IMG/VR virus record: IMGVR_UViG_3300044568_003163
Span: 124,001 to 188,000 of that record
Direction: 5' to 3' (one strand)
DNA length: 64,000 nt
A model generated the notes under the pieces. That model worked only from the letters and a program-made list of their open reading frames with translations. It was not told the origin of the DNA and made no database searches. Numbering within the stretch: position 1 is the first letter of the stretch; each line of letters begins with the position of its first letter. Position numbers and translations under genes: made by a program. Below, in pieces: positions 3,646-40,741 of this stretch.

Positions 3646-3721
3646 ATTAGTTTAATTTGATATACAAATATAAGCAAAAAACTCGACATTAAAAAATGTC
3701 GAGTCATAAAGTTATTAACAA
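3646..3721 (-). promoter_or_regulatory. class I (host-type) promoter with TTGTTAATAACTTT box and embedded terminator hairpin
   Basis: TATATTTG (Bacteroidota -7 TAnnTTTG); near-identical copies at 13561 and 31771. Confidence 0.8.
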
Positions 3722-3727
3722 TTGTTA

Positions 3728-4042
3728 TTACTTAATATGTACCTTTTCGATAGTACCATTGTCCCAATTAGAAAACGTAGGCAATCCAACTGCTATTTTA
3801 ATGGCCTTTTCTAAGGAGCAGTTAATTGTAGCTAACGCTTGTTTTTTGTTGTCTACCTCGATACTGATTTGCCAATTGCCGGTTTCAGTTAATTTATGAT
3901 TGCTCATCAATTCAACACCTACTGGAGTTGCTAAAAATTCTTGAACTTGGTCATCAATAGTCATTTGACTAACCTCGTATTTTTGTCTTTCTAACCTATC
4001 AATGTTAGCTTGAATCTCGTTAATTTTATCTTCTTTTCTCAT
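3728..4042 (-). CDS. hypothetical protein
   Basis: ORF packing. Confidence 0.7.
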   Translation of the reverse strand: MRKEDKINEIQANIDRLERQKYEVSQMTIDDQVQEFLATPVGVELMSNHKLTETGNWQISIEVDNKKQALATINCSLEKAIKIAVGLPTFSNWDNGTIEKVHIK

Positions 4043-4350
4043 TCGTTATGGTTGTTTAAGTGGTATGTTGCACATTTTATTGCTATCAAAAAATTTATTA
4101 CTAAGTGCCATCTCCAAGCAGGAGCAGTCATCAATTCACCAGAATAAAACCACATATCCAATATGTCAAATAAAGGTCGAGTTAATTCAATGCCTAAGAG
4201 CACATTGAATATTACCCATAAAATAGTAGCACCGATAATAAAAATATTGTAAAGTAAAAATAGACCGAGATGCAATTCCCATTCATATTCCTTTAAAAAC
4301 TTCCAATGGCCTATAATAGGATCTAGTACTCCGGTTAAAAGATTTTTCAT
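4039..4350 (-). CDS. membrane protein
   Basis: hydrophobic segments. Confidence 0.7.
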   Translation of the reverse strand: MKNLLTGVLDPIIGHWKFLKEYEWELHLGLFLLYNIFIIGATILWVIFNVLLGIELTRPLFDILDMWFYSGELMTAPAWRWHLVINFLIAIKCATYHLNNHNE

Positions 4351-4351
4351 A

Positions 4352-4735
4352 TTATTTGATAATTTTTATTGCTTCTACTAATCCAAAATTAACTACCGAC
4401 TCATAATTTTGGTCAATAATCCATCCTGGAAGTAATTTTATTCCCATTTTTGTGTCATAGATATCGAAAAAATAACCTTCAATATCTCTTGCTTTGTCAA
4501 CCGTCAGATGCATCTGGTGGACATCTCGTAACCACCTGGTCATCGTTGTCTGTGTGACACAAGATATTCTAACGGAACCAAATTGAAACTCGTCGTTAAA
4601 GTTTTCTTTTTTCTCTTTGTCTTTACTTACATAACGTTGACCATTTTGCTTAGCGTAAAATGCGTTTGTTGGTAAATCAAATCCTTTACTTTTCGCTAAT
4701 GTAGCTACTTCAAAAGAAACCGGTTCGTCTTCCAT
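4352..4735 (-). CDS. hypothetical protein, paralog of 1805..2149
   Basis: VSFEVAxLxKxKGF and WLRDVH motifs. Confidence 0.75.
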   Translation of the reverse strand: MEDEPVSFEVATLAKSKGFDLPTNAFYAKQNGQRYVSKDKEKKENFNDEFQFGSVRISCVTQTTMTRWLRDVHQMHLTVDKARDIEGYFFDIYDTKMGIKLLPGWIIDQNYESVVNFGLVEAIKIIK

Positions 4736-4942
4736 CTATTCTTTATCCTTTTCTATTAAATGACTACCTAACCAATACTCGTCTTTAAATTTGATATGTT
4801 TGAATGGTAATTTAATTTCACCGGTTTCTTCGTCAAATTTAACTTCTTCTGATTTTCTTAATAGATTCCATTTTATCCACTTTTTGATAATGATAAATGA
4901 AATTATGAGACCTATTATTGCAACAATTGTAAATGTTATCAT
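4736..4942 (-). CDS. small membrane-anchored protein
   Basis: N-terminal TM. Confidence 0.65.
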   Translation of the reverse strand: MITFTIVAIIGLIISFIIIKKWIKWNLLRKSEEVKFDEETGEIKLPFKHIKFKDEYWLGSHLIEKDKE

Positions 4943-4952
4943 AATTTAAAAT

Positions 4953-5204
4953 TTAAGGCATTACCCAATAATACTTACCTTTATGTAAGCATACTGGTAT
5001 GTTTGTTAGTGGTTGTTCAATTGGTACTCTATAAATAATTACTAAACCTTTGTCTGTTAGGATGGTAACTTTTCTAGTATGCTGATATGTAGGAACTGCA
5101 TAAATTACTTCGCCATCTAATCTGATAGATTTTTTGCAGATATTCTTCGGACCTGAACAAGCTGATAACATTATGCAAAATAAGAGAACAGTTAGCCTTT
5201 TCAT
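4953..5204 (-). CDS. putative lipoprotein
   Basis: signal peptide with lipobox LSAC. Confidence 0.65.
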   Translation of the reverse strand: MKRLTVLLFCIMLSACSGPKNICKKSIRLDGEVIYAVPTYQHTRKVTILTDKGLVIIYRVPIEQPLTNIPVCLHKGKYYWVMP

Positions 5205-5229
5205 TATTTTATATTTTAATGTTATATGC

Positions 5230-5487
5230 CTATTCTTCCTCTTTGATTAATATAAGTGCTGTTTGATATTTGTATTCCCAAGCACCATTCATTCCTTTAA
5301 CAATTTCAAATTCTACTTCATCGCCTATTTTTAGGCCTCGAGTAGAATTAGGATCGATCGGTAATTGTTTTGTTATTGTATGAACATCATACACAATGCC
5401 ATTCATGTCCTTTACTGATCTAAAAAACTCAGCATATTCAACAACCATACCGAGTTCTTCGTGCTTTACTATTTTTCCTTTATCCAT
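5230..5487 (-). CDS. hypothetical protein
   Basis: ORF packing. Confidence 0.7.
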   Translation of the reverse strand: MDKGKIVKHEELGMVVEYAEFFRSVKDMNGIVYDVHTITKQLPIDPNSTRGLKIGDEVEFEIVKGMNGAWEYKYQTALILIKEEE

Positions 5488-6769: not shown

Positions 6770-6839
6770 TTTAATTATAGAGTAAAACTAATCAATTTAG
6801 GTGACATATGGAAATAAAATGTGATAAAGTTGTTAACAA
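6770..6839 (-). promoter_or_regulatory. class I promoter variant (TAGTTTTA) with TTGTTAACAACTTT box
   Basis: same box spacing as other copies. Confidence 0.7.
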
Positions 6840-8140: not shown

Positions 8141-8214
8141 TGATTAATTTTATAAGACAAATATAATCAAAATTCCGGTCACCTAGAAATTTTTTATCAA
8201 TAAGTTATTAACAA
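8141..8214 (-). promoter_or_regulatory. class I promoter
   Basis: TATATTTG plus TTGTTAATAACTT box. Confidence 0.75.
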
Positions 8215-8925
8215 TTAAATTGTAGCAAATGTCATTGACTTAAATTTTTCTTTATTGTAAATGATGTAAGAATTATTTTCTATCCAATCTCCACAATTCA
8301 AATAATGAATTTCATCTATGATTTTATTTTCCGGTTTGTGAATATGTCCGCAGATAACACCTTTACAATCTCGCTTCTTAGCTTGATAAACTAATTGAGA
8401 TTCGAAAGCTGTAATAAATTTGACTGCACTTTTTACTGAGTCTTTTGCCCATTTTGATATTGATCGCTTATAACCTAATTTCTTTAATAGCCTATCGGTA
8501 GTTATTGCAATTTCATATCCTGTAGAACCTAGATGAGCAAGCCACTTCATATTCATTACTCCATCATAAAGGTCACCATGTGTAATATAATACTCGTTCC
8601 AAATAAATTCATCAACTATTTGAATATTTCCTATAAACTCGCTAGGTGAATATTCTCTGAGAAATTCATCATGATTACCGGTTACGTAAATAACTTCGGT
8701 TCCTTTCTTAGACATTGAAAGAATTTTTCGGATAACGTTAGTATAGTCTTGAGTCCAATAATGTCTTTTCTTTAACAACCAACCGTCAATAAAATCACCA
8801 ACAATAAAAAGTTTCTTAGGTTGGTATTTTTTAAGGGTTTGTAGAAGTTTTTCTGCATTACATCCTTTACTTCCTAAATGAACATCAGATATAAATAAAG
8901 CTTCTACTTTTATAATTTTACTCAT
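8215..8925 (-). CDS. metallophosphoesterase, LpxH/YbbF-like (UDP-2,3-diacylglucosamine hydrolase-like)
   Basis: SDVHLG, GDFID, GNHD, HGD, GHIH, NCGDW motifs. Confidence 0.85.
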   Translation of the reverse strand: MSKIIKVEALFISDVHLGSKGCNAEKLLQTLKKYQPKKLFIVGDFIDGWLLKKRHYWTQDYTNVIRKILSMSKKGTEVIYVTGNHDEFLREYSPSEFIGNIQIVDEFIWNEYYITHGDLYDGVMNMKWLAHLGSTGYEIAITTDRLLKKLGYKRSISKWAKDSVKSAVKFITAFESQLVYQAKKRDCKGVICGHIHKPENKIIDEIHYLNCGDWIENNSYIIYNKEKFKSMTFATI

Positions 8926-13560: not shown

Positions 13561-13637
13561 TATTAGTTTAAATTGATATACAAATATAAGCAAAAAACTC
13601 GACATTAAAAAATATCGAGTCTTAAAGTTATTAACAA
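13561..13637 (-). promoter_or_regulatory. class I promoter/terminator repeat, copy 2
   Basis: near-identical to 3646 and 31771. Confidence 0.8.
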
Positions 13638-14342
13638 TTATAAGAATAAATCAGGAAATCTAGCCTTTTCTAGTCGTCTGACCATTATGGCATTATATAA
13701 ATCTAAGTTCCATTTGGCATCAGCTAAAGCATTATGTTCTTCTACTGGAGTAGGACAATTTTCTTGCATCCAATCCGGACCTAATTCACCTTCTTCATCA
13801 AAAATTTGTTTTAAATCTCTACAATAAAATGGAAATCCTTTAGGCATATCAATCATTCTGCCAAACAACCAACAAAGAACAACCCAATCATAATCTGCAT
13901 AGTAGCCATAAAACTCAACTGGAAATAAATGCTTAACATCTTCCCAATTGGCAATAGCTTCCGGATCGTTGATTTGACTGTGCAGATAAACAAAATTCTT
14001 TACTCTTTCAGCAATAACTGGTTTAGTAGATCCTTGATTACGTAACAAATAAGCTAAATTCTTAATGTTATAATCACTAACGTCTAATTCAGTAAATGGA
14101 AATTCTTTCTCTAAGTTGAGTAAGTCTTGGAATAACTTGGTCAATACATTTGCATTTAACCACTCGTTATTCCAAGCTGCCTCTATGTCAAATTCATTGC
14201 AGATTTCATATAAAGTCTCACCGGTTTCTGTTACAATGCCTATCGAGATGAGGTCGATTGTATCTATTGCGGCAGTTTGAATTCCTAAAATTCTTTTGCA
14301 TTTCTTGAATTCGTGGAATTCAGTGTCTAGAAAAAACTTCAT
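13638..14342 (-). CDS. DEDD 3'-5' exoribonuclease (Rv2179c-like)
   Basis: FLDTEF, YADYDWV, HNALADA. Confidence 0.85.
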   Translation of the reverse strand: MKFFLDTEFHEFKKCKRILGIQTAAIDTIDLISIGIVTETGETLYEICNEFDIEAAWNNEWLNANVLTKLFQDLLNLEKEFPFTELDVSDYNIKNLAYLLRNQGSTKPVIAERVKNFVYLHSQINDPEAIANWEDVKHLFPVEFYGYYADYDWVVLCWLFGRMIDMPKGFPFYCRDLKQIFDEEGELGPDWMQENCPTPVEEHNALADAKWNLDLYNAIMVRRLEKARFPDLFL

Positions 14343-17800: not shown

Positions 17801-17883
17801 GATGCGTAAGTAACATTTTGTGATACTATATTAACAGAAAACAAAAATAATAATAACACTAATCTAATAAGTTTAGTCGTCAT
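14863..17883 (-). CDS. secreted DUF4874/DUF4832 glycoside-hydrolase-like protein with T9SS-type C-terminal domain
   Basis: signal peptide; NPERG, GFIGVYGEW, GFYNDAFL, LGYRL; YTYWSSP/NLVGNPY region; C-terminal KGIYLLRV...K. Confidence 0.75.
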   Translation of the reverse strand: MTTKLIRLVLLLFLFSVNIVSQNVTYASSTENIANPERGLQKYSKNINNSGNYSFVNQTTLTNWRNTDKITVIYRYVMLSEFVNNNSTISNAYLTNLQTDFNRIRNAGLKVILRPAYTDQYVANVQPNKQTILNHIQQLAPIVNANKDIIVSLQGGFIGVYGEWYYTEGSPELGDEDNITSTQWLNRKEIVDAMLSNFNSQIPIQVRYAEAKRRMYGSTLLTDATAYQNTPSARIGFYNDAFLNEYGDMGTYNISNCTTPVGTSDYNFIANAAQYLPMNGESNGYNPCNGGFRTTGENAVIELNQLNFSTLNRDYHPDVWGGWIATGHYDEIVRNLGYRLQLNSTTLTVGSTIDFTMNISNIGYANVVSPKNAYLVFVSTDGTEYKKLLNLDVRLLKATHTISESLVNDLPDGQYTAHLHLADQNLENRPEYSIRLANSDVAFNSTTGYNNLNQVVNVLNSTCTITTVWNGSMWSNGSPNLTVIAQIDGPYTATAASSFSTCNLIVNSTLTINNNAYVEVLNDIVVNPSGTLLVRSGGKLIPVSDTSTATGNVTVQRTTPSLKIYDYTYWSSPTNAVIDSALLPTNWWYYRTFTFETQNFYDIQTQLNGVITPGPDGQDDDGDAWLSVNQTDNFIPGKGYASMVQPDGIFPRTETVSFTGGLNAGIISYPMVLSANATSNVDDFNLVGNPYSSSIFADDFINANIDNILGTLSFWSHAGTLSSAYPGLMLLNFSTNDYAHYNLSGGINASFGGKTPSGYIASCQGFMIQAKNAANLVFRPSFMAPGYLNDTPINFFRLQNNNQTKYRISMSTELGLYSQQLINYNDTTTLDFEDGWDLKQPGGRSALKFYTIENDIKYKIQARGNFDISDVVKVGYFSAIPETYTITLDSIDGIDNVYIKDYGVTHTLPYTFTTEEGEFNNRFELVYTNLLGVGEYEYGMVVINPKPSIFEIINLEDGQVKVYDMAGKQIDVKLSGNLLDMTNISKGIYLLRVEKGEAMSTFKISN

Positions 17884-26480: not shown

Positions 26481-26549
26481 TTATTTATAAGACAAATATA
26501 ACAAAAAACCTCGATACTAGAAAATATCGAGGCTTAAAGTTGTTAACAA
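26481..26549 (-). promoter_or_regulatory. class I promoter with embedded hairpin
   Basis: TATATTTG, box TTGTTAACAACTTT, CCTCGATA/TATCGAGG stem plus T run. Confidence 0.75.
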
Positions 26550-30846: not shown

Positions 30847-31089
30847 TTATTTAATGTTTTCCTCGTAAGTTGTTTTACCAGATTTTTGAGAAGATATCGT
30901 TTCACCTTTTGATGTAAAATAATGCCAACGATTTCCATCAATAAATCGATAAACCTTTACACCGTCTTTAGTAAACAGATATTCAACATGAAAGCCATTG
31001 CCTTCTATAGATGTTGATTGTGCTGGTTTGTAGTCCATGCAAGATGTTGCTAATACTGCAACCGCAAATAATAAGATTAGATTTTTCAT
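30847..31089 (-). CDS. putative lipoprotein
   Basis: lipobox ATSC; LFTKDGVKVYRF. Confidence 0.7.
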   Translation of the reverse strand: MKNLILLFAVAVLATSCMDYKPAQSTSIEGNGFHVEYLFTKDGVKVYRFIDGNRWHYFTSKGETISSQKSGKTTYEENIK

Positions 31090-31640
31090 TAGTTTAATTT
31101 TTTAAAAAAGTTAATATCTTCAAATTCTTCGGTTAATTGTAGCATTTTATAGATTTCATCGAGTTCGTCTTTAGTTAAATCGTTAATAGATTTACTATCA
31201 GATTTGTCCTTAGAAAAGATTTCATGTTTGTGAATGAATGCCGAAGTTACTCGTTGCATTTCTTTCGCTTGTTCCTTACGTTTTTTCATGATTGCTCTAC
31301 GTAATTCTAAACGGTAGATTTCCCATCGTTCGCTAAAATTGTACCATTCAGATTCATTCATTTCAGTAGCATACATTCCTTTACCTCTACATTTATTTGC
31401 AGTAAAATCAGAACCTACAATCGAAGCAACTAAATTGACCATCATTTGTTTATTGTCAAGTGTTACTTTATAAATGATACGTCTGGTTCTAGCTTCTGGT
31501 GCTACATCGCTGATTCGTAAGTCGTACTTTTCTAAGAATGCAGTTAGCATTTTAGTAGCAGTTTCTTGTTCACCACCTACTCCTTGAACTGCAAGTGCAT
31601 GAAGTTTTTGTCCTAATTTGATAATTTTTTCTGTTGCCAT
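31089..31640 (-). CDS. DUF2786-like protein
   Basis: KLHALA..GVGGEQETA...LEKY. Confidence 0.65.
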   Translation of the reverse strand: MATEKIIKLGQKLHALAVQGVGGEQETATKMLTAFLEKYDLRISDVAPEARTRRIIYKVTLDNKQMMVNLVASIVGSDFTANKCRGKGMYATEMNESEWYNFSERWEIYRLELRRAIMKKRKEQAKEMQRVTSAFIHKHEIFSKDKSDSKSINDLTKDELDEIYKMLQLTEEFEDINFFKKLN

Positions 31641-31642
31641 GA

Positions 31643-31765
31643 TTACGAATTTATAGCTTTACAAACCCATGATTGAGAAACATTAAGTCGAGATGCAATA
31701 ACTGAGGTTGTAAGATTTTCGTTGAAGAACAAATCTTTGGCCATTTGTGTTTTTGTGATTTTCAT
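31643..31765 (-). CDS. 40-aa helix-turn-helix protein (not in ORF track)
   Basis: TTSVIASRLNVSQSWVCKAI; first ORF after a class I promoter. Confidence 0.65.
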   Translation of the reverse strand: MKITKTQMAKDLFFNENLTTSVIASRLNVSQSWVCKAINS

Positions 31766-31770
31766 ATTTG

Positions 31771-31847
31771 TATTAGTTTAATTTGATATACAAATATAAG
31801 CAAAAAACTCGACATTAAAAAATGTCGAGTCATAAAGTTATTAACAA
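31771..31847 (-). promoter_or_regulatory. class I promoter/terminator repeat, copy 3
   Basis: near-identical to 3646 and 13561. Confidence 0.8.
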
Positions 31848-31848
31848 T

Positions 31849-32829
31849 TTATCTTCGACTGTAGACTTTTTGCATTTCTTCGTAAGTCTCAAATATATTA
31901 TCAGTAGGTTCTTGCTTATTTGAATAAATTTCAATAGCTAGATTTTCTTTGATATATTGAACTGCATTCTTACGAATATCTACTTTACCCTTTTGAATGT
32001 GTGCATATCTATTATAACCTGCGATTTCAAAATTAGTTAAACTTTCTTTGACTTCTCTTCTGTGGTCATTTTTTAACTTACAATTTGAGTATCTCGAAGT
32101 GTACATCAAATTACGAAGTAACTCTATGTTTGTATCTGTATTTGTAAATTGAGGATTCACTCTTTCGCCTTGGTCTTTATCTGAAGCCAAGTAATTTTCT
32201 TTAACTACTTTGTTTGATAGAGGATAGTCATCAAGTCTGAATTTACCGTTTGGCATTTCATAAGCAAAGAATGCTCTTTCAGGAGTTTCATCGATATATT
32301 TTAAATGCGTTGTGGTTCGAGAATATCCATAACCGTATTGAATCTTCGTACTTAAGGTAGCAATATTGAATGTTCCGAGGTAAACCATTACGTTACCTTG
32401 CTTACAAATTGCACTAATTACTCTATCGCCTGGAGTTAATTGCTTAACTGAATAAGTTTTAGCTTCTTCTTTCTCTTTTTTGTCATGAAGCATTTCCATG
32501 TAATCTAAAGTATCAGCTCTCACTAAGACCATTGAACCACCTTGCATAATTTCTTCAACAAAAGTAATAGGATTCTTAATTACTCCATACTCTAATTGTA
32601 TTTTGTCAAGCGGCAATTGGTAAAAATCTACCCAAATGTTTTTTGGTAAGTCCGGATGAGCCAATTGAAATCCTTGGTCATTCCATGAAACGATTTTGAC
32701 ATCGGTCATTGGTTCGTTCTTGAAAGGCACTGTATTTTTGTCCTTTGTTTTACGTACTCTTAAACCGATATGTACGTCTTTTAAAATTCGATAGCTACAA
32801 TTCATATTTTTAGTTTTCTTGAATTCCAA
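31849..32829 (-). CDS. hypothetical protein
   Basis: long ORF. Confidence 0.8.
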   Translation of the reverse strand: MEFKKTKNMNCSYRILKDVHIGLRVRKTKDKNTVPFKNEPMTDVKIVSWNDQGFQLAHPDLPKNIWVDFYQLPLDKIQLEYGVIKNPITFVEEIMQGGSMVLVRADTLDYMEMLHDKKEKEEAKTYSVKQLTPGDRVISAICKQGNVMVYLGTFNIATLSTKIQYGYGYSRTTTHLKYIDETPERAFFAYEMPNGKFRLDDYPLSNKVVKENYLASDKDQGERVNPQFTNTDTNIELLRNLMYTSRYSNCKLKNDHRREVKESLTNFEIAGYNRYAHIQKGKVDIRKNAVQYIKENLAIEIYSNKQEPTDNIFETYEEMQKVYSRR

Positions 32830-33061
32830 ATGTTAAACCTCTATTATACCATCCGCTTCCAGATAGGCAATACTTGACATCATCTTTGTAATAAGTCATC
32901 CAAAAATCCCAATCCCATCCATTTGAATCAAAATCACCTTCCTCAAATCCATTCTCTTTAAGTATTTTAGAAGCTTCTTCCGGTGACATTAACGTCGATG
33001 TTTTAAATTCAGTTATCTCTCCAGTTAAAACTTTAAGCAATTGTTCTTTAAACTCTTCCAT
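32810..33061 (-). CDS. hypothetical protein
   Basis: NGWDWDFW; start reassigned to MEEFK. Confidence 0.7.
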   Translation of the reverse strand: MEEFKEQLLKVLTGEITEFKTSTLMSPEEASKILKENGFEEGDFDSNGWDWDFWMTYYKDDVKYCLSGSGWYNRGLTFGIQEN

Positions 33062-33062
33062 A

Positions 33063-33260
33063 TTATTTGTCTTGAATGTCCATATAACCAACGATACAAC
33101 CTACTCCAGTAAATGTTGCAGCAGTATAGATAACTTCCGCTTTGCCGATAGGTTCCCAATTACAATTTATCATCTTGATGATGCATTTTACTTCTCCTAC
33201 TAATAAGGCTATCGATATAGCCAATACAATAATTCCTCCAATTAATCCAGTTTTTCTCAT
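33063..33260 (-). CDS. small membrane protein
   Basis: two hydrophobic segments. Confidence 0.65.
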   Translation of the reverse strand: MRKTGLIGGIIVLAISIALLVGEVKCIIKMINCNWEPIGKAEVIYTAATFTGVGCIVGYMDIQDK

Positions 33261-33271
33261 AATATTTGATT

Positions 33272-33520
33272 TTAATATTTTACTAATGATACAAGTACAA
33301 TGTGACCTGCAGTTGCTTGACTACTGATGATATAACCTTTCTTTAGGTAACCATTTACTTTTGATTGGTCACTACCAAATCCATCAACTCCAATTTGCAA
33401 GTAAACTTGCGATTTAGGCTGAGCTGGTTTGATAGTAATTAAATTTTGTACTGCTGGTGTTGCAGCAACTGAGACGATAAGAACGATTCCTAAAAGAAAT
33501 CCGATGAGTGCGTTTTTCAT
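33272..33520 (-). CDS. secreted/membrane hypothetical protein
   Basis: N-terminal hydrophobic segment. Confidence 0.65.
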   Translation of the reverse strand: MKNALIGFLLGIVLIVSVAATPAVQNLITIKPAQPKSQVYLQIGVDGFGSDQSKVNGYLKKGYIISSQATAGHIVLVSLVKY

Positions 33521-33530
33521 AATGATTAAT

Positions 33531-33596
33531 TTTGATATGTAAAAGTAATCAATCTAGACGACAATGTGAAATGAATTTGTATAAAGTTATTAACAA
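33531..33596 (-). promoter_or_regulatory. class I promoter variant (TACTTTTA)
   Basis: box at conserved spacing. Confidence 0.65.
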
Positions 33597-34120
33597 AATT
33601 CAATTATCTCATAATCATCTAGACTGAGTCTAGGTTCAGCAATTTCTGGTTCATGAAACTTTAAACATTCGTGAATGTACTTTGAATGGTCAATCCATTT
33701 TTCGTTTGCATAACCTAATGTAAGGTGAAAGCTGAAATATGGAATTCTACTAGTTCCGCAAATTTCACGTATAGATTCAGCATCCGGTGACCATACTCGT
33801 AACCACCAGTGTTCACCGTTGGTTCTTGGTGAAGGGTCTATATAAAATACTATTTCTTTTTTATCAAACAACTTAGCGCCTTCGTCAAAATTAGGAGTTT
33901 CCCTTTCCGAATCATTAATGAAAGTAACGTGAGAACCTCTGATAGGTTTGTTTAATTCTAAGTTGAATCGCTTTTTAATAAACCATGCATAATAGTTGTG
34001 CAGCTCGTCATTAGTCAAAATGACAGCTACTCGTTTCCAAGAAGCTTGTGCGTTGTGCTTCTTTGTTTTATTAGGAGGCTGGAATTCCATCACTCCTTTG
34101 ACCTTTATTAACTTACTCAT
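33590..34120 (-). CDS. 2H phosphoesterase-like protein
   Basis: two HxT motifs: SHVTF and FHLTL. Confidence 0.65.
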   Translation of the reverse strand: MSKLIKVKGVMEFQPPNKTKKHNAQASWKRVAVILTNDELHNYYAWFIKKRFNLELNKPIRGSHVTFINDSERETPNFDEGAKLFDKKEIVFYIDPSPRTNGEHWWLRVWSPDAESIREICGTSRIPYFSFHLTLGYANEKWIDHSKYIHECLKFHEPEIAEPRLSLDDYEIIEFC

Positions 34121-34443
34121 TATTTGGTTAGTTTTGAGTTAGCAACGTTAAGAGTTTTGATTTCTCGTTTAAGCTGAGTTAAGTTTTTGATTACCGCTTT
34201 ACGATTCCAATTATTGACTGCCATTTCCTTTTTGTATTTTTGCATCTTAGTAGAATTTCTAATAGACAATACAATAGAATATTTAGTAGAGTACAATTTT
34301 AGCTTTTCGGCCTTTAAGATTCTTTCGTATTCTGCATCGAACTTGCGAATTATACGAGGACGTTCTAATTCGAGGTTGTTCAAATTCATAAGGTTAATGT
34401 AACGTTCGTTTAGCTTGTCTTTGAGGATTTCTAATAGAGTCAT
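34120..34443 (-). CDS. basic hypothetical protein
   Basis: first ORF after a class I promoter. Confidence 0.65.
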   Translation of the reverse strand: MTLLEILKDKLNERYINLMNLNNLELERPRIIRKFDAEYERILKAEKLKLYSTKYSIVLSIRNSTKMQKYKKEMAVNNWNRKAVIKNLTQLKREIKTLNVANSKLTK

Positions 34444-34451
34444 GATAATCG

Positions 34452-34533
34452 TTTTTAATTATAAAGTAAAACTAATCAATTTAGACGATATATGAAAATA
34501 AAAATGAAGCTATTTTTTGAAAGTTATTAACAA
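34452..34533 (-). promoter_or_regulatory. class I promoter variant, box shifted +10 bp
   Basis: TAGTTTTA plus TTGTTAATAACTTT. Confidence 0.7.
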
Positions 34534-34950
34534 TTAGGCCTTTACTAATTTGTTTGATTCCCATTTGAATTCACCAAAGATGATACCGTCGACGATTGTA
34601 TTTTCTTTAACGATATCTAAGAAGTGGCTTAAGTAAATTTCTACCGTCCAACCTTCAGGAGTTATTACAGATGCCCAGTTTTGACTTTGACCAAATCTCC
34701 AGGATTCTAATTGCCAACCGCCTCGGAATTCTTCAGTATGAATTTGTATTACTGGCATTGGCAAATACTCTTTCTTTTCGTAATCATATGCATTACCCCA
34801 ATCAATAAAAGATTTTGGCAATTCTCCTTTCTGTGTTAGCTTTGCGAGAAAGCCGGTTTCAGGTTCGTTAGGATATCGTTGACTTGCAGGTCTTACTTTT
34901 AAAAGATATTCGTTTTCTTGTAGCTTATAGCCTAGTTCGTATAGTCTCAT
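34534..34950 (-). CDS. hypothetical protein
   Basis: ORF packing. Confidence 0.75.
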   Translation of the reverse strand: MRLYELGYKLQENEYLLKVRPASQRYPNEPETGFLAKLTQKGELPKSFIDWGNAYDYEKKEYLPMPVIQIHTEEFRGGWQLESWRFGQSQNWASVITPEGWTVEIYLSHFLDIVKENTIVDGIIFGEFKWESNKLVKA

Positions 34951-35237
34951 ATATTAAATCTTTTCATTACTTTCATTCGGTCAATTTCAAAGGCCATTTG
35001 TTCTAATGATTTCGTATCAAAAATAACTTGATTAGTTTTAGAATCCATCATAACTCTATCATATTCACCAGTAGCCTTATTACGAGTAACAAAGCAATGA
35101 ATATTTTTTAAAGCATCTTTATTAAGACCATTGTCGGTTTGAGCATAATTAGTGCTAGATTTATCGTGAAACCATTCATGAGTATCAGACTCAAAATATA
35201 GGCCATCGTGTTCTAAAAATTGATTTCTTTCTTCCAT
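34947..35237 (-). CDS. hypothetical protein
   Basis: ORF packing. Confidence 0.7.
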   Translation of the reverse strand: MEERNQFLEHDGLYFESDTHEWFHDKSSTNYAQTDNGLNKDALKNIHCFVTRNKATGEYDRVMMDSKTNQVIFDTKSLEQMAFEIDRMKVMKRFNI

Positions 35238-35405
35238 TTATTGATTAGTGTTTTCGAAAATAATGATTTGGTTGTTCACAAAAGCATATTGTCGATGCTG
35301 TGCCTCGATTTTTTTGTCTAGGTATTTTTCAGTTTTGCTTTTCTGAGTTAATCTCGTTGATGAACATCCAGTTACCAACATTGCAATAAGTAAATATTTC
35401 CACAT
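35238..35405 (-). CDS. 55-aa putative lipoprotein (not in ORF track)
   Basis: MWKYLLIAMLVTGC lipobox. Confidence 0.6.
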   Translation of the reverse strand: MWKYLLIAMLVTGCSSTRLTQKSKTEKYLDKKIEAQHRQYAFVNNQIIIFENTNQ

Positions 35406-35407
35406 AA

Positions 35408-35602
35408 TTAAATTGTTATTCCATTAACACTAATTGATCGTATCGATTGGTCACCTCGTAATTTTGCAAGATAAGCACCAACATTTTTGATATTGTCGTA
35501 AGTTACCGAATAACCGGAATAGTAAACTTTAACGACTGAACCGCCTAATGTTTTAGAAAGAGGATTGGTTCTCATGAAAGGTTTTGGATTGTAATTTGAC
35601 AT
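35408..35602 (-). CDS. hypothetical protein
   Basis: ORF packing. Confidence 0.65.
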   Translation of the reverse strand: MSNYNPKPFMRTNPLSKTLGGSVVKVYYSGYSVTYDNIKNVGAYLAKLRGDQSIRSISVNGITI

Positions 35603-35605
35603 AAT

Positions 35606-35926
35606 TTATTTTTTATGGGATTTGAAAGTAAATGAAGCTGGCCATGTTCTATCATCATCAGATTCGAAATTTGTAACGTCGACCAATTCAAAACGATATT
35701 CTGTAGTTTGCAGATTAGCCTTTTCGATTACATCGGCTAATTGCATTGTACTTTCCTGTTCCCAATAACGTAAGTTGTATGTTCTCATATAATTACATTC
35801 ACAAGAATCTTCGGTATTTGGATTACAAGAAGTCATTGAATTACCAATGTTTTGCTTTTCGGTTTCAGTAAATTCACATAAGATAGCCAAATCTGGATGT
35901 GAACTCGGAATTGTATAATTTTTCAT
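35606..35926 (-). CDS. hypothetical protein
   Basis: ATG at 35926, downstream of a promoter. Confidence 0.7.
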   Translation of the reverse strand: MKNYTIPSSHPDLAILCEFTETEKQNIGNSMTSCNPNTEDSCECNYMRTYNLRYWEQESTMQLADVIEKANLQTTEYRFELVDVTNFESDDDRTWPASFTFKSHKK

Positions 35927-35930
35927 TTGA

Positions 35931-36001
35931 TTAATTTTATAAGACAAATATAATCAATACGTGTGATACCTGAAAATAAATTTACATAAAGTTGTTAACA
36001 A
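35931..36001 (-). promoter_or_regulatory. class I promoter
   Basis: TATATTTG plus TTGTTAACAACTTT. Confidence 0.75.
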
Positions 36002-36012
36002 TTTAATACAAC

Positions 36013-36040
36013 AAAAGGCTTACCGTAAAGCAAGCCTTTG
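36013..36040 (-). terminator. intrinsic terminator
   Basis: AAAGGCTT/AAGCCTTT stem plus T run. Confidence 0.7.
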
Positions 36041-36056
36041 AATGAGTTTTGTTCGT

Positions 36057-36419
36057 TTATGTGAAAATTACTGCATATAAACCTACAGCTATACTTGCAC
36101 CGATGATTCCTCCATAGGTACCAAAATTAATATCTTCTTCACTCCATGGTGCTTTATATTTAGCTCCATAATACCACTCACGAACCCAGTTTACTGCTTT
36201 AGCACCGAATCCACCAACAAATACTTGAAATAATATTGGAGTGTCTGCTAAATGCATAAAATTTAACATTAGCAATATACAAGGAATAGTTAGAACTAGT
36301 GAATATAAGAAATGCTTGTGATAATTTTGTTTAATGAAATCTTTCGTTAAAAAGAATTTCATGTCAGTAAAGAATTTAATGATTCCATCTCTTAACATTG
36401 GCCAAATTGTTATTTCCAT
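36057..36419 (-). CDS. membrane protein
   Basis: HKHF...E...D pattern with three TM segments. Confidence 0.7.
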   Translation of the reverse strand: MEITIWPMLRDGIIKFFTDMKFFLTKDFIKQNYHKHFLYSLVLTIPCILLMLNFMHLADTPILFQVFVGGFGAKAVNWVREWYYGAKYKAPWSEEDINFGTYGGIIGASIAVGLYAVIFT

Positions 36420-36514
36420 AATATTTAATTTTTTTAAAGCACCTAAATTAATTAGATTTGCTTTAATTATCTATCTAAATATGGATATAATTCAAATAAC
36501 AAATTCACATTTAT

Positions 36515-36543
36515 AAAAAAGAGGACTCTTTCGAATCCTCTTT
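36515..36543 (-). terminator. intrinsic terminator of the Ro-like gene
   Basis: GAGGATTC-GAAA-GAGTCCTC-TTTTTT. Confidence 0.85.
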
Positions 36544-36565
36544 AAATAGCAATCATTATATTTGA

Positions 36566-38002
36566 TTACTGAATAACACTGTATCTCTCAGTATCAATAG
36601 CTTTAAGCATAATACTCATAGGACTCATAGAATCTCCACTAAGCACTGCTTTAAGAATTGACGGTGAAAATCCACTGATTAAAGCGGTACCATTCTCAGT
36701 TGCTCTAACTGGAACGTTGTCGTGTCGAGAAACTAAGTTCCAAAACACAATCTTTGGCATTGCATAGCCAGAATCAGAGTATTTTCTTTCGATCATACTG
36801 ATAGCATTGTCACTTATACGTGACGCTTGGTTGAATTCCATGTCAGACATAATCAATAGACATGTTGGCATTTGGTCAATCGAAACGTTATGTTTGATTG
36901 CTTGTTCAAGAATCATATCGAAGGTAGCTTCTAGATTCGTTGACATACCCCATTGAGCACGTTCTAATTGTTGCATTCTCGAACGTAAATCTCCTGTTAG
37001 GTACTCTAACTTTGGTCTTTCGCTGAAAGTTACAAATGCATCTTTGAAGGGACCTTCATTTCTTTCAGAAATATAAAGACCTAATGAGATACAAACGTCT
37101 AGTGCAGAAACTGAACCAGAAACAGTTGTAGACATTGAACCAGAAACATCACAGATAGGTAAAACCATTTCTTTAGATCCTTCCATAAAGTTAGGAAGAG
37201 CTTTCCATTGCTCGTTTGATAACGTAGTGTCACCGTAAGACATTGTTTTTGTAACGTCATATGGATATACGGCACCTGCATTAACTTTAGTTTCACCTTT
37301 AACTAGTGACTCTTTGTAAGCCTCGAATGCTTCGGCATCATTTTTACCAAAAGCTTTTGAGTATCTCGCCATTGCAACAGAAGGTATATGAGCATAGTTA
37401 ACATTACCAAAGTCTTTGTTACATAAGTTAGTTTCAATAACGTTAGTTAAAGAAACAATCTTAGTTCTAAATTCTTTAGGTGATAAGCCCATTTTGGTTC
37501 TGATTTTGTTAGCAATAGCCTTTTTATCAGCCGATACTTTACCACCAGTTCGAGGAATCCATTTTGCAAGTAATCCATTACCTTCTTCAAGATTATGAAT
37601 AACTGTAGCAATTGCAGCATCTTCTACCGCAGTTCCGAATGTTACGAATATGTCATCCCATCTACCGAACTCGGCAATCAAATGAATGTTTTCAATAACT
37701 TCGTTAGGATAAACCTCAGAAGCATGACGTAAAAGTACTCGGAAAGCTTCACGTTCTCCTGCTCCACCTCTAACGTCTCTTCCCCAATACATCAATTTTC
37801 TTGTGATTAAAGGATTCTCATTATGTGCAGCTTCAAACTTAGCTATCAAACGTGATTTACCTTCATCGGTTTTCATTTGAGCTCTTACCGCTCCCATCAC
37901 GAAAAATAAATCTACACAAGCATTAAGAGAAGTGGTAGATGTTACCATTCCATTTTCAGTAGTTGTGTTTTTAGTACGCATTGCATCAACAAAAGTTGTC
38001 AT
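36566..38002 (-). CDS. DUF2828-family Ro60/TROVE-like protein with C-terminal vWA domain
   Basis: TENG, RDVRGGAGER, GRWDD, AKWIPR; MIDAS DVSGSM...STN...SDMEF; FWNL. Confidence 0.85.
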   Translation of the reverse strand: MTTFVDAMRTKNTTTENGMVTSTTSLNACVDLFFVMGAVRAQMKTDEGKSRLIAKFEAAHNENPLITRKLMYWGRDVRGGAGEREAFRVLLRHASEVYPNEVIENIHLIAEFGRWDDIFVTFGTAVEDAAIATVIHNLEEGNGLLAKWIPRTGGKVSADKKAIANKIRTKMGLSPKEFRTKIVSLTNVIETNLCNKDFGNVNYAHIPSVAMARYSKAFGKNDAEAFEAYKESLVKGETKVNAGAVYPYDVTKTMSYGDTTLSNEQWKALPNFMEGSKEMVLPICDVSGSMSTTVSGSVSALDVCISLGLYISERNEGPFKDAFVTFSERPKLEYLTGDLRSRMQQLERAQWGMSTNLEATFDMILEQAIKHNVSIDQMPTCLLIMSDMEFNQASRISDNAISMIERKYSDSGYAMPKIVFWNLVSRHDNVPVRATENGTALISGFSPSILKAVLSGDSMSPMSIMLKAIDTERYSVIQ

Positions 38003-38183: not shown

Positions 38184-38376
38184 CAGATTGGCTGTTTAGA
38201 TTTTGTGAAGCATCTAGAAACTTCCTCAGTAGTTTTGAAGTGGGATTTGATACCACCAGTCGCTTTGTTTTAAAGTGATGACTAAACTCACTTAATCAAC
38301 CGGCTTTTGAATTTCACGATTGATTTCGTTAATGGTTATCTGTAGATAAGTTGTTTGTTTGCTGAACCCAATCTTT
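38184..38376 (-). ncRNA. stem-loop RNA 1 (long Y-RNA-like candidate)
   Basis: AGATTGG/CCAATCT stem, TTCAGCAA, several inner hairpins including T-arm-like GTGG-TATCAAATC-CCAC. Confidence 0.6.
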
Positions 38377-38415
38377 GATATATTGTAAGAACGTATGTCG
38401 TTGTAACTAGAATTA

Positions 38416-38443
38416 TTATATGTGAGCTAATTTATTTAGTTTC
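38416..38443 (-). promoter_or_regulatory. class II promoter GAAACT-N15-CATATAA driving the RNA array and Ro-like gene
   Basis: exact match to the repeated motif. Confidence 0.7.
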
Positions 38444-38445
38444 AA

Positions 38446-38844
38446 TTAAATTTTAATTTTTTCTAAAAATTTATAAACTCCTTTATCATAATTGAATAAG
38501 ATAAACCATTTTGATTTGTTCCATTTGCCAGTTCTAATACTTGCAAGAGATTTTTGAACGTAAGGTGCACTTGAACTTTGAACGTTATAAGCTTTTACTT
38601 CTACAAAATCTCCGTTTTCATCAATCAAATCATGATATCGAGAATCAGAAAGTTGAAAGTTGTAATTTTCGGTAAGCCAAAGTTCTAATGTTTTGCCTTG
38701 CTTAACAGTACCTTTAATTTCCTCCAGACTTCGGCTCCTTCTTGTATAAGGAGAATCGAAAAGCGCTTGGGATTCGGATTCGATGAGCCTTTCCAATAAT
38801 AATTTGTCCTTTATGTCCGATTCGGTAAATTGTGCGTTTTCCAT
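38446..38844 (-). CDS. PD-(D/E)xK-like nuclease-fold protein
   Basis: GKTLE...HDL...VEVKAY. Confidence 0.55.
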   Translation of the reverse strand: MENAQFTESDIKDKLLLERLIESESQALFDSPYTRRSRSLEEIKGTVKQGKTLELWLTENYNFQLSDSRYHDLIDENGDFVEVKAYNVQSSSAPYVQKSLASIRTGKWNKSKWFILFNYDKGVYKFLEKIKI

Positions 38845-38986
38845 TTTTTGCTTGTTTTACAACTTCTTTTAAAGTTCTATCTGCTAAAACTATAGAGATA
38901 TTACTTGGGTCTTGCATTACTAACTGAAATTCTTCAGGTGTAAGGGAAGTCATAATGTAACCATAGAGATTACTGAGTTGGTTCAT
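38714..38986 (-). CDS. hypothetical protein (3' end overlaps neighbour)
   Basis: fills the gap; 131-nt overlap lowers confidence. Confidence 0.45.
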   Translation of the reverse strand: MNQLSNLYGYIMTSLTPEEFQLVMQDPSNISIVLADRTLKEVVKQAKNGKRTIYRIGHKGQIIIGKAHRIRIPSAFRFSLYKKEPKSGGN

Positions 38987-39407
38987 TGATTAGTGATTGT
39001 AAATATTTTATACGGTCGTTAACTGCTTCTTTATATTGTTCTGATGCAAATGCAGATAGCTCGCTTATTGCTAATTTGATAGCCAGCTCACTGTACTTAG
39101 CTTGAACTTCTCCTATGGTGATGTTAGTTTTCCAATCACATACTTCACAAATCTCATCTACCCATTCTGAATAATCATGTTGGATTCTTTCTCTAACATT
39201 CATTGGCTCAACATCAATCCAAGGTTTAATCCAACAAAAAGGAATGTTGATTCTCATTTCATCTAATCCTAGACCAAATAAGACATCATAAACATCTTTA
39301 GTAAGTACATCTATTATGATGCCTTCTGTGCCTCTTAGTACATTTTGGTAATCCGAGTCACATATAACTCTATCTCCCTTTTTGTATACTTTTGATATAT
39401 CGGTCAT
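38970..39407 (-). CDS. hypothetical protein, SH3-like N-terminus
   Basis: KKGDRV...GTEGII. Confidence 0.7.
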   Translation of the reverse strand: MTDISKVYKKGDRVICDSDYQNVLRGTEGIIIDVLTKDVYDVLFGLGLDEMRINIPFCWIKPWIDVEPMNVRERIQHDYSEWVDEICEVCDWKTNITIGEVQAKYSELAIKLAISELSAFASEQYKEAVNDRIKYLQSLINEPTQ

Positions 39408-39822
39408 AATCTTTTAATGTTTGGTTGATTCTTTCTCTGCCTGCAGGATTCATCGAGTGAACGATGCATTCTGGTAATGCGATTCCATTATCAATACAGA
39501 ATTGAACAAACCATCTTGCAGATTCATTTCCTGTATCTTCTTTAAATTGAGTTGCCTTAACATTATAATTGTCAATTCCATGATACATTGATGGGTCGTA
39601 ATGCTCATCGGCTAAATCGTGATCGAATGAAACTAATTCTGGAAATTGACCGTTGGCAAATCTTTCAGCTACTTCGATAACGAATGCTGAATGAGACCTA
39701 ACAGTTATCCATTCCCGAGTTCCGTATCGAGCCTCTCTCATGTAATTAGTACAGTCAGTTGGTACTCTAATATCGTCTAAAAATAGACTGTAAGTTTTGA
39801 AGTTTATAATGTGATTTCTCAT
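39370..39822 (-). CDS. cyclic-phosphate-processing receiver-like domain protein
   Basis: LFLDDIRVP, VSFDHDL, TG, VHSMNPAG. Confidence 0.8.
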   Translation of the reverse strand: MRNHIINFKTYSLFLDDIRVPTDCTNYMREARYGTREWITVRSHSAFVIEVAERFANGQFPELVSFDHDLADEHYDPSMYHGIDNYNVKATQFKEDTGNESARWFVQFCIDNGIALPECIVHSMNPAGRERINQTLKDYDRYIKSIQKGR

Positions 39823-39852
39823 AATTGTTATATGCAATAAAGGTGTTTTTGA

Positions 39853-40410
39853 TTAAACCTTTTCGTCGAAAAATACTTCACAATGGTCTTTTGAATAGCA
39901 ACCAGTAAGTCCACGAGATTCGTTAATAGATTTGATATTATCATAAGCAACTGCCATACCCTCATATCGGTAATTAAGGCTCATTTTAGAGAAAGCTTTT
40001 TGCCAAACTTTAACTTCAGTTTTAACCCATTCTCCATGTCGTTCGATGATTTCATATGGCTTAACAAATTCTAATAGATGATGCCAAATAAGACCATCTC
40101 GTTTAGTGAATTCTCTACGCATTGCACTGATTGCAATCTTTCTACGTCGATAATATTCATCATAAGCTTTAGCACATTCTTCATCTGACATGGTTTCGTC
40201 ATATTCTAAATTCTTAGGAGTTGTACCTGGTTGATACACATCCATAGCACCAATTAGATAAAGCTCTTGTGCAACTAATGGCATTGCATAGAATCCTCTT
40301 GGTGCTGGCGGTGAATGAAAAGTTTTTGGAATAATATTGAAACCTTTTTGTTTCTTTATTTCTAGACCTCCAAACCTTACAAATCTCGTTAAGTCTTTAC
40401 CTTTTGTCAT
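39853..40410 (-). CDS. hypothetical protein
   Basis: RFGGL...FHSPPAPRGFYA...IWHHL...DHCEVF. Confidence 0.75.
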   Translation of the reverse strand: MTKGKDLTRFVRFGGLEIKKQKGFNIIPKTFHSPPAPRGFYAMPLVAQELYLIGAMDVYQPGTTPKNLEYDETMSDEECAKAYDEYYRRRKIAISAMRREFTKRDGLIWHHLLEFVKPYEIIERHGEWVKTEVKVWQKAFSKMSLNYRYEGMAVAYDNIKSINESRGLTGCYSKDHCEVFFDEKV

Positions 40411-40411
40411 A

Positions 40412-40651
40412 TTAATCTCCTGAATCTACCGTATGAATTACTGTATACGTTTGGTCTTCAATAAGAACATCAAAGCCGTATTCGTTATAGCATCTACCTA
40501 AATTTCTAGAAGTTCCTGAGTTAGCAACTTTAAATTCTTGCAATGCTTTGTACTGATCTCCGGTTTTTTGGTTCCAACCATTTGCAGTACCTAAATTGAT
40601 TATTCCTTCTTTGGCTCTTTCGATTGCCTCTTTGATAATTTCTGAGTTCAT
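40412..40651 (-). CDS. hypothetical protein
   Basis: first ORF after a class I promoter. Confidence 0.7.
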   Translation of the reverse strand: MNSEIIKEAIERAKEGIINLGTANGWNQKTGDQYKALQEFKVANSGTSRNLGRCYNEYGFDVLIEDQTYTVIHTVDSGD

Positions 40652-40660
40652 AATATATGT

Positions 40661-40741
40661 TTTTAATTATAGAGTAAAACTAATCAATATTTCGGACATA
40701 GAGAAATAAATTATGTTAAATTTTTATTAAGTTATTAACAA
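40661..40741 (-). promoter_or_regulatory. class I promoter variant, box shifted +10 bp
   Basis: TAGTTTTA plus TTGTTAATAACTT. Confidence 0.7.

Follow-up and report, generated by a model that had tools for sequence, protein, structure and literature searches.

A freshwater jumbo phage of Bacteroidota carries an invariant 13-base box 48/49 or 58/59 bp upstream of 35 of its early-type promoters, and the same box lies upstream of replication genes in Bacteroidota chromosomes, while its 9-mer core clusters at the inferred chromosome origin of two Flavobacteriaceae genomes. We consider it somewhat more likely than not that the phage has wired its early genes to the host replication initiator DnaA, although DnaA as the binder, the sign of the effect and its timing are inferred. 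We found no description of such an arrangement in the literature searched.

To determine whether the box is a genuine element, we searched the window, i.e. the whole stretch of 64,000 nucleotides analysed, corresponding to positions 124001-188000 of a 294,034-bp virus record (IMGVR_UViG_3300044568_003163). The window holds 11 exact copies of TTGTTAAYAACTT, all on the - strand (Table 1), and allowing one mismatch gives 13 matches against 1.08 expected, with 0 of 100 shuffles reaching 13. The sequence-only reading had placed ten of these copies at a fixed offset of 46 bp (eight promoters) or 56 bp (two promoters), counted from the -7 octamer to the G of the box; these offsets are exact, and correspond to 49 and 59 bp when counted from the first T of the box to the T of TAnnTTT[G/A]. 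The C variant of the box holds the perfect palindrome TTGTTAACAA, as had been noted, and the commoner T variant holds the 9-bp palindrome GTTA-A-TAAC.

Table 1 Boxes and box-less core promoters in the window (window positions; spacing from the first T of the box to the T of the -7 element).
Position	Strand	Element	-7 octamer	Spacing (bp)	Context
3709..3721	-	Box TTGTTAATAACTT	TATATTTG, 3665-3672	49	Spacer is a hairpin followed by a T-run
6827..6839	-	Box, C variant TTGTTAACAACTT	TAGTTTTA, 6783-6790	49	Terminator-like hairpin upstream of the box
8202..8214	-	Box	8158-8165	49	Abuts the stop codon of ORF 8215-8925
13625..13637	-	Box	13581-13588	49	Abuts the stop of ORF 13638-14342; spacer is a hairpin followed by a T-run
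26537..26549	-	Box, C variant	26493-26500	49	Spacer is a hairpin followed by a T-run
31835..31847	-	Box	31791-31798	49	Spacer is a hairpin followed by a T-run
33584..33596	-	Box	TACTTTTA, 33540-33547	49	Stop codon of the upstream ORF lies inside the box
34521..34533	-	Box	34467-34474	59	Abuts the stop of ORF 34534-34950
35989..36001	-	Box, C variant	35945-35952	49	Hairpin upstream of the box
40729..40741	-	Box	40675-40682	59	Hairpin upstream of the box
63331..63343	-	Box (eleventh copy)	Degenerate, TACTTTAT, 63287-63294	49	-7 followed by ATATAATAATAAA, which resembles the late-type motif
54455..54462	-	Core promoter of the same family, no box upstream (PWM score 35.3)			Genome coordinate 178462
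44973..44980	-	Core promoter of the same family, no box upstream (PWM score 25.4)			Genome coordinate 168980

Next, we extended the search to the whole phage genome, which contains 31 exact copies, all on the - strand, plus 5 copies with one mismatch, compared to 0 matches to a reversed-pattern control. Of the 31 boxes, 30 are followed by TAnnTTT[G/A], with the consensus TTGnTTAtaTTTg and the ATG about 25-35 nt downstream, in line with the Bacteroidota sigma-A promoter, in which a -7 element TAnnTTTG lies about 5 nt before the start (PMC6847099). A PWM of the core promoter alone, built without the box, detected 43 sites, all on the gene strand, of which 30 have an exact box, 5 have a one-mismatch box and 8 have none. 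In these 35 box-bearing promoters, the box starts 48/49 bp (26) or 58/59 bp (9) upstream of the -7 element, and never at another distance. The sequence-only reading had also stated that the box usually abuts the upstream stop codon; of 26 genome-wide copies with a called upstream ORF, the gap is 0-2 nt in 12 and 6-8 nt in 4, the called stop overlaps the box in 5 (by 7 nt in four, so that the stop lies inside the box, and by 18 nt in one), and the gap is 48-104 nt in the remaining 5, where a hairpin lies in between in those that were folded.

The genes downstream of these promoters are of early/middle type, including small ORFs, PNK, RNA ligase, nucleases, a primase-like gene, CCA-adding enzyme and NAPRTase, whereas head genes follow a different motif, and the phage has a gp55-like late sigma. 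The label 'early-type' fits the gene content and the presence of a distinct late-type motif elsewhere in the genome rather than resting on expression data; two metatranscriptome runs that we inspected gave only contigs that do not show transcription starts.

We subsequently asked whether the element is shared by other phages and by host chromosomes. The same 13-mer with the same periodic spacing (39/49/59/69 bp) occurs in more than 120 stretches from over 80 other IMG/VR phage contigs, with individual records carrying up to 14 strand-biased copies, and with almost no matches to the reversed-pattern control (2 against more than 100 box copies). About 20 of 30 unbiased Flavobacteriaceae gyrB upstream regions carry TTGTT(A/G)ATAACTT, next to a classic box TTTTYCACA. 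In other Bacteroidota, the exact box precedes dnaE, dnaB, a UvrD-like helicase, four RNR genes, three tdk genes, a dNK gene and three rsmH genes. Across other phages and host genomes, the spacing peaks at about 39/40, 47-51, 57-61 and 69-72 bp, supporting the earlier inference of face-of-helix dependence. However, the exact 13-mer is no commoner in host genomes than its control, so the host regulon rests on a few conserved sites, and the host of this phage is not identified below phylum level.

Several features point to DnaA in particular. Read on the + strand, the box is AAGTTATTAACAA, which is 7/9 to TTATCCACA and 8/9 to the DnaA consensus TTWTNCACA (Schaper and Messer, as quoted in bioRxiv 10.1101/866236), the T variant being TTATTAACA. 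The box varies only at 9-mer positions 3 and 5, the tolerant positions of that consensus, its nAG 5' flank is shared with the classic oriC boxes of other Bacteroidota, and its one-way orientation fits an asymmetric monomer site. In Flavobacterium sp. PS2, 15 copies of the core TTRTYAACA lie in 2.3 kb beside rpiB, against a background of 0.062 per kb, where sampled GC skew turns from - to +, and the same synteny and skew switch are seen in a second genome; in these two complete genomes the clustering is about 100-fold, at origins inferred from skew. Across 30 Flavobacteriaceae genomes, there are 85 copies per 100 kb around rpiB, against 14-28 for control words. Also, Flavobacteriaceae DnaA differs from that of E. 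coli at two of six base-contact residues (residue list from PMC2533591), with A at positions 423 and 435, where other Bacteroidota have K at 423 and S or T at 435; there is a precedent for a shifted box specificity (PMC5043019).

The phage itself encodes a 97-aa protein that is only DnaA domain IV (Bac_DnaA_C, 63.8 bits), and jumbo-phage contigs that encode relatives of this protein also carry box promoters. Nevertheless, only 1 of 29 other box-bearing viral records has a Bac_DnaA_C match; records rated 100% complete with 4 and 5 boxes lack it, as do fragments with 8-14 boxes, although many of these records are incomplete.

Taken together, our preferred explanation is that the box is a lineage-variant DnaA box, AAG-TTAT(T/C)AACA-A on the + strand, serving as an upstream, orientation-specific, face-of-helix-dependent regulatory site of phage promoters read by the host sigma-A RNA polymerase. 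In the F. johnsoniae numbering (T of TA = -12), the box spans -61 to -49 in the 49-bp class and -71 to -59 in the 59-bp class, and is therefore always on the same face of the helix as the polymerase. Host DnaA is present at the moment of injection, and we infer that it binds the box and stimulates initiation, as it would at host promoters built the same way (gyrB, RNR, tdk, dnaE, dnaB), which would tie about 35 early/middle phage operons to the host's replication-competent state; upstream position and phasing suggest activation but do not prove it. The phage domain-IV protein probably binds the same boxes, and could take over, block or time this control, and could also occupy the host oriC. 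These observations support the sequence-only proposal of an activator site for a host protein such as DnaA, whereas its alternative, an injected phage factor, gains no direct support, although a phage-encoded domain-IV protein, not shown to be injected, exists. A bolder extension remains tentative, namely that Flavobacteriaceae, and to a degree Bacteroidota at large, use a shifted DnaA-box specificity (nAG-TTRTYAACA-A) linked to the substitutions at positions 423 and 435, that a large, widespread group of their phages has made this box the defining upstream element of a whole early-promoter class, with the host initiator acting as general early transcription activator, and that some jumbo phages additionally use a stand-alone domain IV to take over or shut down both the phage boxes and the host origin.

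A second protein specific for the A-type box cannot be excluded, although we consider this unlikely. In this view, the box would be the operator of another, undescribed Bacteroidota DNA-binding protein, for example a dimeric HTH regulator reading the palindrome GTTA-N-TAAC, which would control a replication/dNTP regulon, bind at the origin and be exploited by phages, while DnaA would keep to classic TTWTNCACA boxes. Position 6 of the 9-mer is A in every phage copy, where the classic consensus fixes C; classic-type boxes with C (TTGTTCACA, TTTTYCACA) are conserved at Flavobacteriaceae dnaA and gyrB promoters, and classic TTATCCACA dominates the origins of other Bacteroidota. The palindromic core would suit a dimeric regulator, and the 13 invariant bases exceed a 9-mer. 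On the other hand, the box occurs in one orientation only with asymmetric conserved flanks (CTT on one side), the variable positions and the nAG flank match those of DnaA boxes, the skew-defined Flavobacteriaceae origin has almost no other candidate DnaA boxes (1 classic against 15 A-type), and the phage encodes a DnaA domain IV rather than another DNA-binding fold.

It is more doubtful that the box is read mainly by the phage domain-IV protein, acting like T4 MotA as an early product of a box-less promoter that switches on box-bearing 'middle' promoters, with host DnaA irrelevant or merely a competitor. The promoter of this gene lacks the standard box and has TTAACA repeats instead, and the genome shows a T4-like cascade, with the late sigma and late motif; however, this reading is opposed by the scarcity of the gene among other box-bearing records, many of them incomplete, and by the same box and spacing at conserved host genes, where no phage protein is present. 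An UP-element-like sequence contacted directly by RNA polymerase (alpha C-terminal domain or sigma), strengthening promoters without a separate factor, is very unlikely: the box is A/T-rich, lies at about -50 to -70, and phasing by whole helical turns is probably also a property of alpha-CTD sites, as at E. coli rrnB P1, but its invariant G and C positions are unlike known UP elements, there are only 0-3 exact copies per host genome, the host occurrences form a coherent replication/dNTP set rather than the most highly expressed genes, and the box clusters at the origin, where no promoter logic applies. Least likely is a non-transcriptional role, as part of a terminator-promoter cassette spread by recombination or as a DnaA-titration, replication or packaging signal confined to free intergenic space, since, although several modules are near-identical over about 80 bp, metagenome assemblies break or join at them, and T5-like phages carry DnaA boxes with a proposed non-transcriptional role (bioRxiv 10.1101/866236), the spacer varies freely while the box and its distance stay fixed, the same distance classes recur in unrelated phages and at host genes, and the box is absent from late-gene regions.

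Compared to known systems, the T4 MotA box similarly marks a temporal promoter class with a short conserved box, and the T4-like phage described here may encode the binder itself, but the MotA box replaces the -35 element at about -30 and needs AsiA, whereas the box described here lies 20-30 bp further upstream and also exists in host genomes; no MotCF domain was found, in a search whose control was uninformative. NrdR targets overlap with the host genes found here (RNR and replication genes), yet the NrdR box is probably a 16-bp palindrome of the ACAC...GTGT type in tandem pairs about 31-32 bp apart, and neither this sequence nor a tandem partner is seen in the RNR, tdk or gyrB upstream regions. 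Class I activator sites, such as those of CRP at -61.5 and -72.5, are also upstream and work only at positions one helical turn apart, but the site here is asymmetric and used in one orientation, and its protein and any contact with alpha-CTD remain unidentified. DnaA regulation of host promoters (E. coli dnaA and nrdAB, and the Caulobacter regulon of replisome, RNR and cell-cycle genes) appears similar in its gene set to the host genes found here (gyrB, dnaE, dnaB, RNR, tdk, rsmH/dcw), with a DnaA-box-like 9-mer just upstream of promoters of replication and dNTP genes; here, however, position 6 is A instead of C, a fixed 13-mer is conserved, the phasing at about -56/-66 is strict, the promoters are of the Bacteroidota -7 type, and about 35 copies are used by a phage. 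Finally, phage DNA is already known to carry sites for the host initiator, as in the T5 injection-stop region, for which TTATCAACA and TTATTAACA are even listed as non-consensus 'DnaA*' boxes (bioRxiv 10.1101/866236), and at lambda pR, which DnaA probably stimulates; in those cases there are one or a few sites, downstream of the promoter or in a non-coding repeat region, whereas here the site is a genome-wide, phased upstream element of a whole promoter class, in a different phylum.

The record from which the window is taken (bases 124001-188000 of 294,034 bp) is rated about 91% complete in IMG/VR, is 32% G+C and carries almost every gene on the - strand. PHROGs and Pfam scans showed a T4-like jumbo myovirus with recognisable structural, replication and sigma-factor genes, and a comparison of 12 kb of the window with the INPHARED phage collection gave no near match. 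One 1006-aa protein, which has DUF4874 and DUF4832 domains, ends in a type IX secretion C-terminal sorting domain, suggesting a phage protein exported by the host T9SS; together with the promoter type, this points to a Bacteroidota host. Near-identical DNA occurs in many lake-water metagenomes, and contigs from lake metagenome DNA runs break or join at the promoter modules, skipping 1.5-3.1 kb, which most likely reflects assembly-graph crossings or strain rearrangements at these roughly 80-bp repeats.

We first verified the promoter architecture. All numbers of the sequence-only reading, which had described 11 boxes and, in ten promoters, a -7 octamer at an offset of 46 or 56 bp, were confirmed: the 11 exact boxes in the window all lie on the - strand, eight have the octamer at 46 bp (49 bp when measured, as here, from the first T of the box to the T of TAnnTTT[G/A]), two have it at 56 bp (59 bp by our measure), and one (63331) has a degenerate -7 element. 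The whole genome has 31 exact copies, none on the other strand, and none of the reversed control word. To avoid circularity, we built a weight matrix from the core promoter only (26 nt upstream to 24 nt downstream of the -7 start) and scanned both strands, which returned 43 sites, all on the gene strand. Of these, 30 have an exact box and 5 have a one-mismatch box, and every one of these 35 boxes lies at 48/49 bp (26 cases) or 58/59 bp (9 cases). The remaining eight sites lack the box, and four of those carry TTAACA-type direct repeats instead, in the opposite orientation to the box.

The core consensus is atATTTyc-N3-TgTC-N7-TTGnTTAtaTTTg, followed by an A-rich leader and an ATG, and the extra 10 bp of the long class lies between the box and this core. 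As the -7 element occupies -12 to -5 in F. johnsoniae (PMC6847099), the box spans -61 to -49 or -71 to -59 on that numbering. The box usually touches the upstream stop codon, and sometimes supplies it. In 15 of 31 modules the spacer is a strong hairpin followed by a T-run, an intrinsic-terminator shape embedded between the box and the -7 element, so that terminator and promoter overlap in a module of about 60 bp and the T-run feeds into the TTGnTTA part of the core. Five more modules have a strong hairpin just upstream of the box. Two boxes directly follow the 3' ends of tRNA-like sequences, so the phage tRNA genes lie just upstream of box promoters. ARAGORN found no tRNA gene inside the window.

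Locations of features in the phage genome, in other IMG/VR records and in host genomes
Feature	Location	Strand	Description
Structural genes	genome 242-249 kb		portal, prohead protease and major head protein
Structural genes	genome 219-224 kb		terminase and tail sheath
Replication genes	genome 257-278 kb		helicase, DNA polymerase, RNR and SbcC
Late sigma	genome 251,797-252,156		gp55-like
Sigma-70-family protein	genome 201,598-202,200		200 aa, phrog_1740; behind a one-mismatch box and a weak core promoter
DnaA-domain-IV-only protein	genome 104,285-104,578 (locus L344:14288-14578)	-	97 aa, Bac_DnaA_C, 63.8 bits
Histidine kinase	genome 99,961-101,886		GAF-PAS-PAS
Protein with T9SS sorting domain	window 14866-17883	-	DUF4874, DUF4832, type IX secretion C-terminal sorting domain
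Core promoters without box	genome 236211, 121310, 104611 and 86682		three with ACTTTAACA, then 4 nt, then TTTAACA; 86682 with a single TTTAACA; one drives the DnaA-domain-IV gene
Hairpin and T-run in spacer	window 3665-3721, 13581-13637, 26493-26549 and 31791-31847		plus 11 more copies genome-wide
Second promoter-like motif	genome 242-256 kb, 18.8 kb and 282 kb; window 63270-63290		roughly GATATATAAnTAAA
Boxes after tRNA-like sequences	genome 73,5xx and 50,6xx
Contig breaks or joins	window 31820-31851, 34503 and 35953-35986		lake metagenome DNA runs
Box in the loop of a long hairpin	IMG/VR loci L009, L061, L068, L116 and L121		another phage group; arms flank the box, followed by a T-run
Likely Flavobacteriaceae oriC	L314:5590-8314 (genome G003 at 2.385 Mb)		intergenic DNA around rpiB, next to RNase R
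Likely Flavobacteriaceae oriC	L316:681-2300 (genome G031 at 1.187 Mb)		intergenic DNA around rpiB, next to RNase R
gyrB upstream regions	host loci L249-L278		Flavobacteriaceae
Host DnaA and dnaA promoters	host loci L279-L283 and L387-L416		Bacteroidota

Next, to determine whether the box is private to this phage, we scanned IMG/VR for the box, a 25-45-nt gap and a loose -7 word. The spacers recovered are unrelated in sequence, yet the distances pile up at 39/40, 47-49, 57-61 and 69-72, with few in between, and this holds after removing near-duplicates. Whole records carry up to 14 copies with strong strand bias, while the reversed control word occurs twice, against more than 100 box copies.

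The same scan of one genome per prokaryote species returned mainly Bacteroidota. In many Flavobacteriaceae the hit lies upstream of gyrB at the 59-bp spacing, and an Rfam search of six of these host loci found nothing, so the gene downstream of the host box is protein-coding gyrB and not an RNA. An unbiased sample of 30 family members showed a conserved arrangement in about 20, namely TTTT(T/C)CACA, a classic DnaA-type box, then 4-7 nt, then TTGTT(A/G)ATAACTT, then, where the regions show it, about 46 nt and TATATTTG, a -7 element at the 59-bp spacing. In other Bacteroidota, the exact box with a -7 element precedes dnaE, dnaB, a UvrD-like helicase, four RNR genes with ATP cones, three thymidine kinases, a deoxynucleoside kinase and three rsmH genes. 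Exact and one-mismatch boxes are, however, no commoner genome-wide in hosts than the reversed control. We therefore read the box as a rare operator of a replication/dNTP gene set, not a general promoter part.

Several lines of evidence point to DnaA as the binding protein. On the other strand the box reads AAG-TTATTAACA-A, which is 8/9 to TTWTNCACA, and the positions that vary among phage and host copies (A/G and T/C) are 9-mer positions 3 and 5, the tolerant positions of that consensus. The box is used in one orientation only, as expected for an asymmetric monomer site. In the complete genome of Flavobacterium sp. PS2 (G003), a one-mismatch scan showed a dense cluster on either side of rpiB, with 15 TTRTYAACA words in 2.3 kb against a background of 0.062 per kb and only one classic box present, and sampled GC skew turns from negative to positive between 2.25 and 2.5-2.8 Mb. 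A second complete genome (G031) has the same rnr-rpiB locus, with the skew switch between 1.07 and 1.25 Mb. Across 30 genomes the word is about 3-6 times commoner around rpiB than control words. In contrast, the dnaA-flanking DNA of five Flavobacteriaceae holds no box cluster, so the origin is not at dnaA in this family. In other Bacteroidota, DNA beside dnaA holds clusters of classic boxes written nAG-TTATCCACA, mixed with TTATCAACA, and this nAG flank is the same as in the phage box and in the Flavobacteriaceae origin boxes.

The base-contact residues of DnaA are also in line with this reading. The six residues of E. coli DnaA that contact bases are R399, P423, D433, H434, T435 and H439 (PMC2533591). 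Comparison through the PDB alignment showed that all five Flavobacteriaceae proteins examined have A at 423 and A at 435, whereas 27 of the 28 other Bacteroidota proteins read have K at 423 (one has T) and all have S or T at 435. Bacteroidota DnaA departs from E. coli and B. subtilis at residue 423 and often at 435. A shift in box specificity linked to residues 435/438/439 has a precedent in Epsilonproteobacteria (PMC5043019).

Additionally, the phage itself encodes a protein that is only DnaA domain IV. It keeps R399, H434 and H439, has L, N and A at positions 423, 433 and 435, and has no PHROG family. It has about 20 metagenomic relatives of 97-103 aa (117 aa in one more distant relative), and the contigs examined, which are jumbo-phage-like and reach 326 kb, also carry box promoters, some with the variant ATGTTAATAACTT, which leaves AAG-TTATTAACA intact. 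Candidate roles are a mimic or competitor of host DnaA at the phage boxes and at the host oriC. The phage also encodes a histidine kinase, and relatives (loci L437 and L438) carry a GAF kinase plus a response regulator next to the DnaA-domain-IV gene.

There is also evidence against DnaA. Position 6 of the 9-mer is A in every phage copy, Flavobacteriaceae keep classic-type boxes at dnaA (TTGTTCACA, overlapping the -7 element) and beside the gyrB box, and other Bacteroidota origins are mainly classic. A separate protein specific for the A-type box therefore remains possible.

A phage protein as the sole factor is less well supported. A single-protein scan of IMG/VR found only the same phage, and only one of 29 other box-bearing viral records has a Bac_DnaA_C match; records rated complete lack it, as do fragments with 8-14 boxes, although many of these records are incomplete. 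As host genes carry the same architecture, the general binder should be a host protein. In this phage the domain-IV mimic may nevertheless act on the same sites. Its gene sits behind a core promoter that lacks the standard box, in this phage and in the relatives whose upstream DNA could be read, except one that has a one-mismatch box about 70 bp from its -7 element, which hints at separate control. A search of the phage for MotCF gave no hit, but its control was also silent, making this uninformative. A general host promoter element was rejected on the lack of genome-wide enrichment, and NrdR, CRP/FNR-type and IHF-type readings were dropped because the sequences do not fit their probable consensus.

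Taken together, the box is a fixed-phase, fixed-orientation upstream element on a promoter class that drives small ORFs and nucleic-acid enzymes, while the portal, protease, head and other structural genes follow a different motif that resembles the T4 late promoter, in a phage that has a gp55-like late sigma. We infer that DnaA bound at about -56 or -66 may contact RNA polymerase on one face of the helix and stimulate initiation, as a class I activator does, and that the phage protein may then modulate this. Two lake metatranscriptome runs, which hold 6-9% of the words, gave contigs over 36606-37000 and small pieces near 31667-31848 and 33252-33351 when compared with 31001-37000 of the window, with no start-site information. 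The sign and timing of the proposed effect are inferred.

If this reading is correct, it gives the first defined upstream regulatory element for phage early promoters in Bacteroidota, a phylum whose transcription signals differ from the E. coli model and are poorly mapped, and shows a host replication initiator recruited as a genome-wide phage transcription factor, which would couple phage takeover to the host's replication state. It would also suggest the DnaA box and oriC position of Flavobacteriaceae, beside rpiB and rnr, together with a DnaA regulon for gyrB, RNR, tdk, dnaE and dnaB, and identify a family of phage proteins that mimic DnaA domain IV as candidate inhibitors of host initiation. 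On the practical side, the 13-mer with its 49/59-bp rule is a simple marker that can be used to annotate early operons and to assign Bacteroidota hosts to metagenomic phage contigs.

In the literature searched, we found no description of a phased DnaA-type box defining a whole phage promoter class, of its spread across Bacteroidota phages, of the variant origin box of Flavobacteriaceae, or of the phage family of domain-IV-only proteins. There are known precedents: DnaA probably acts as a transcription factor at E. coli dnaA and nrd and in the Caulobacter regulon, and DnaA boxes occur in phage DNA in the T5 injection-stop region (bioRxiv 10.1101/866236) and, it appears, at lambda pR.
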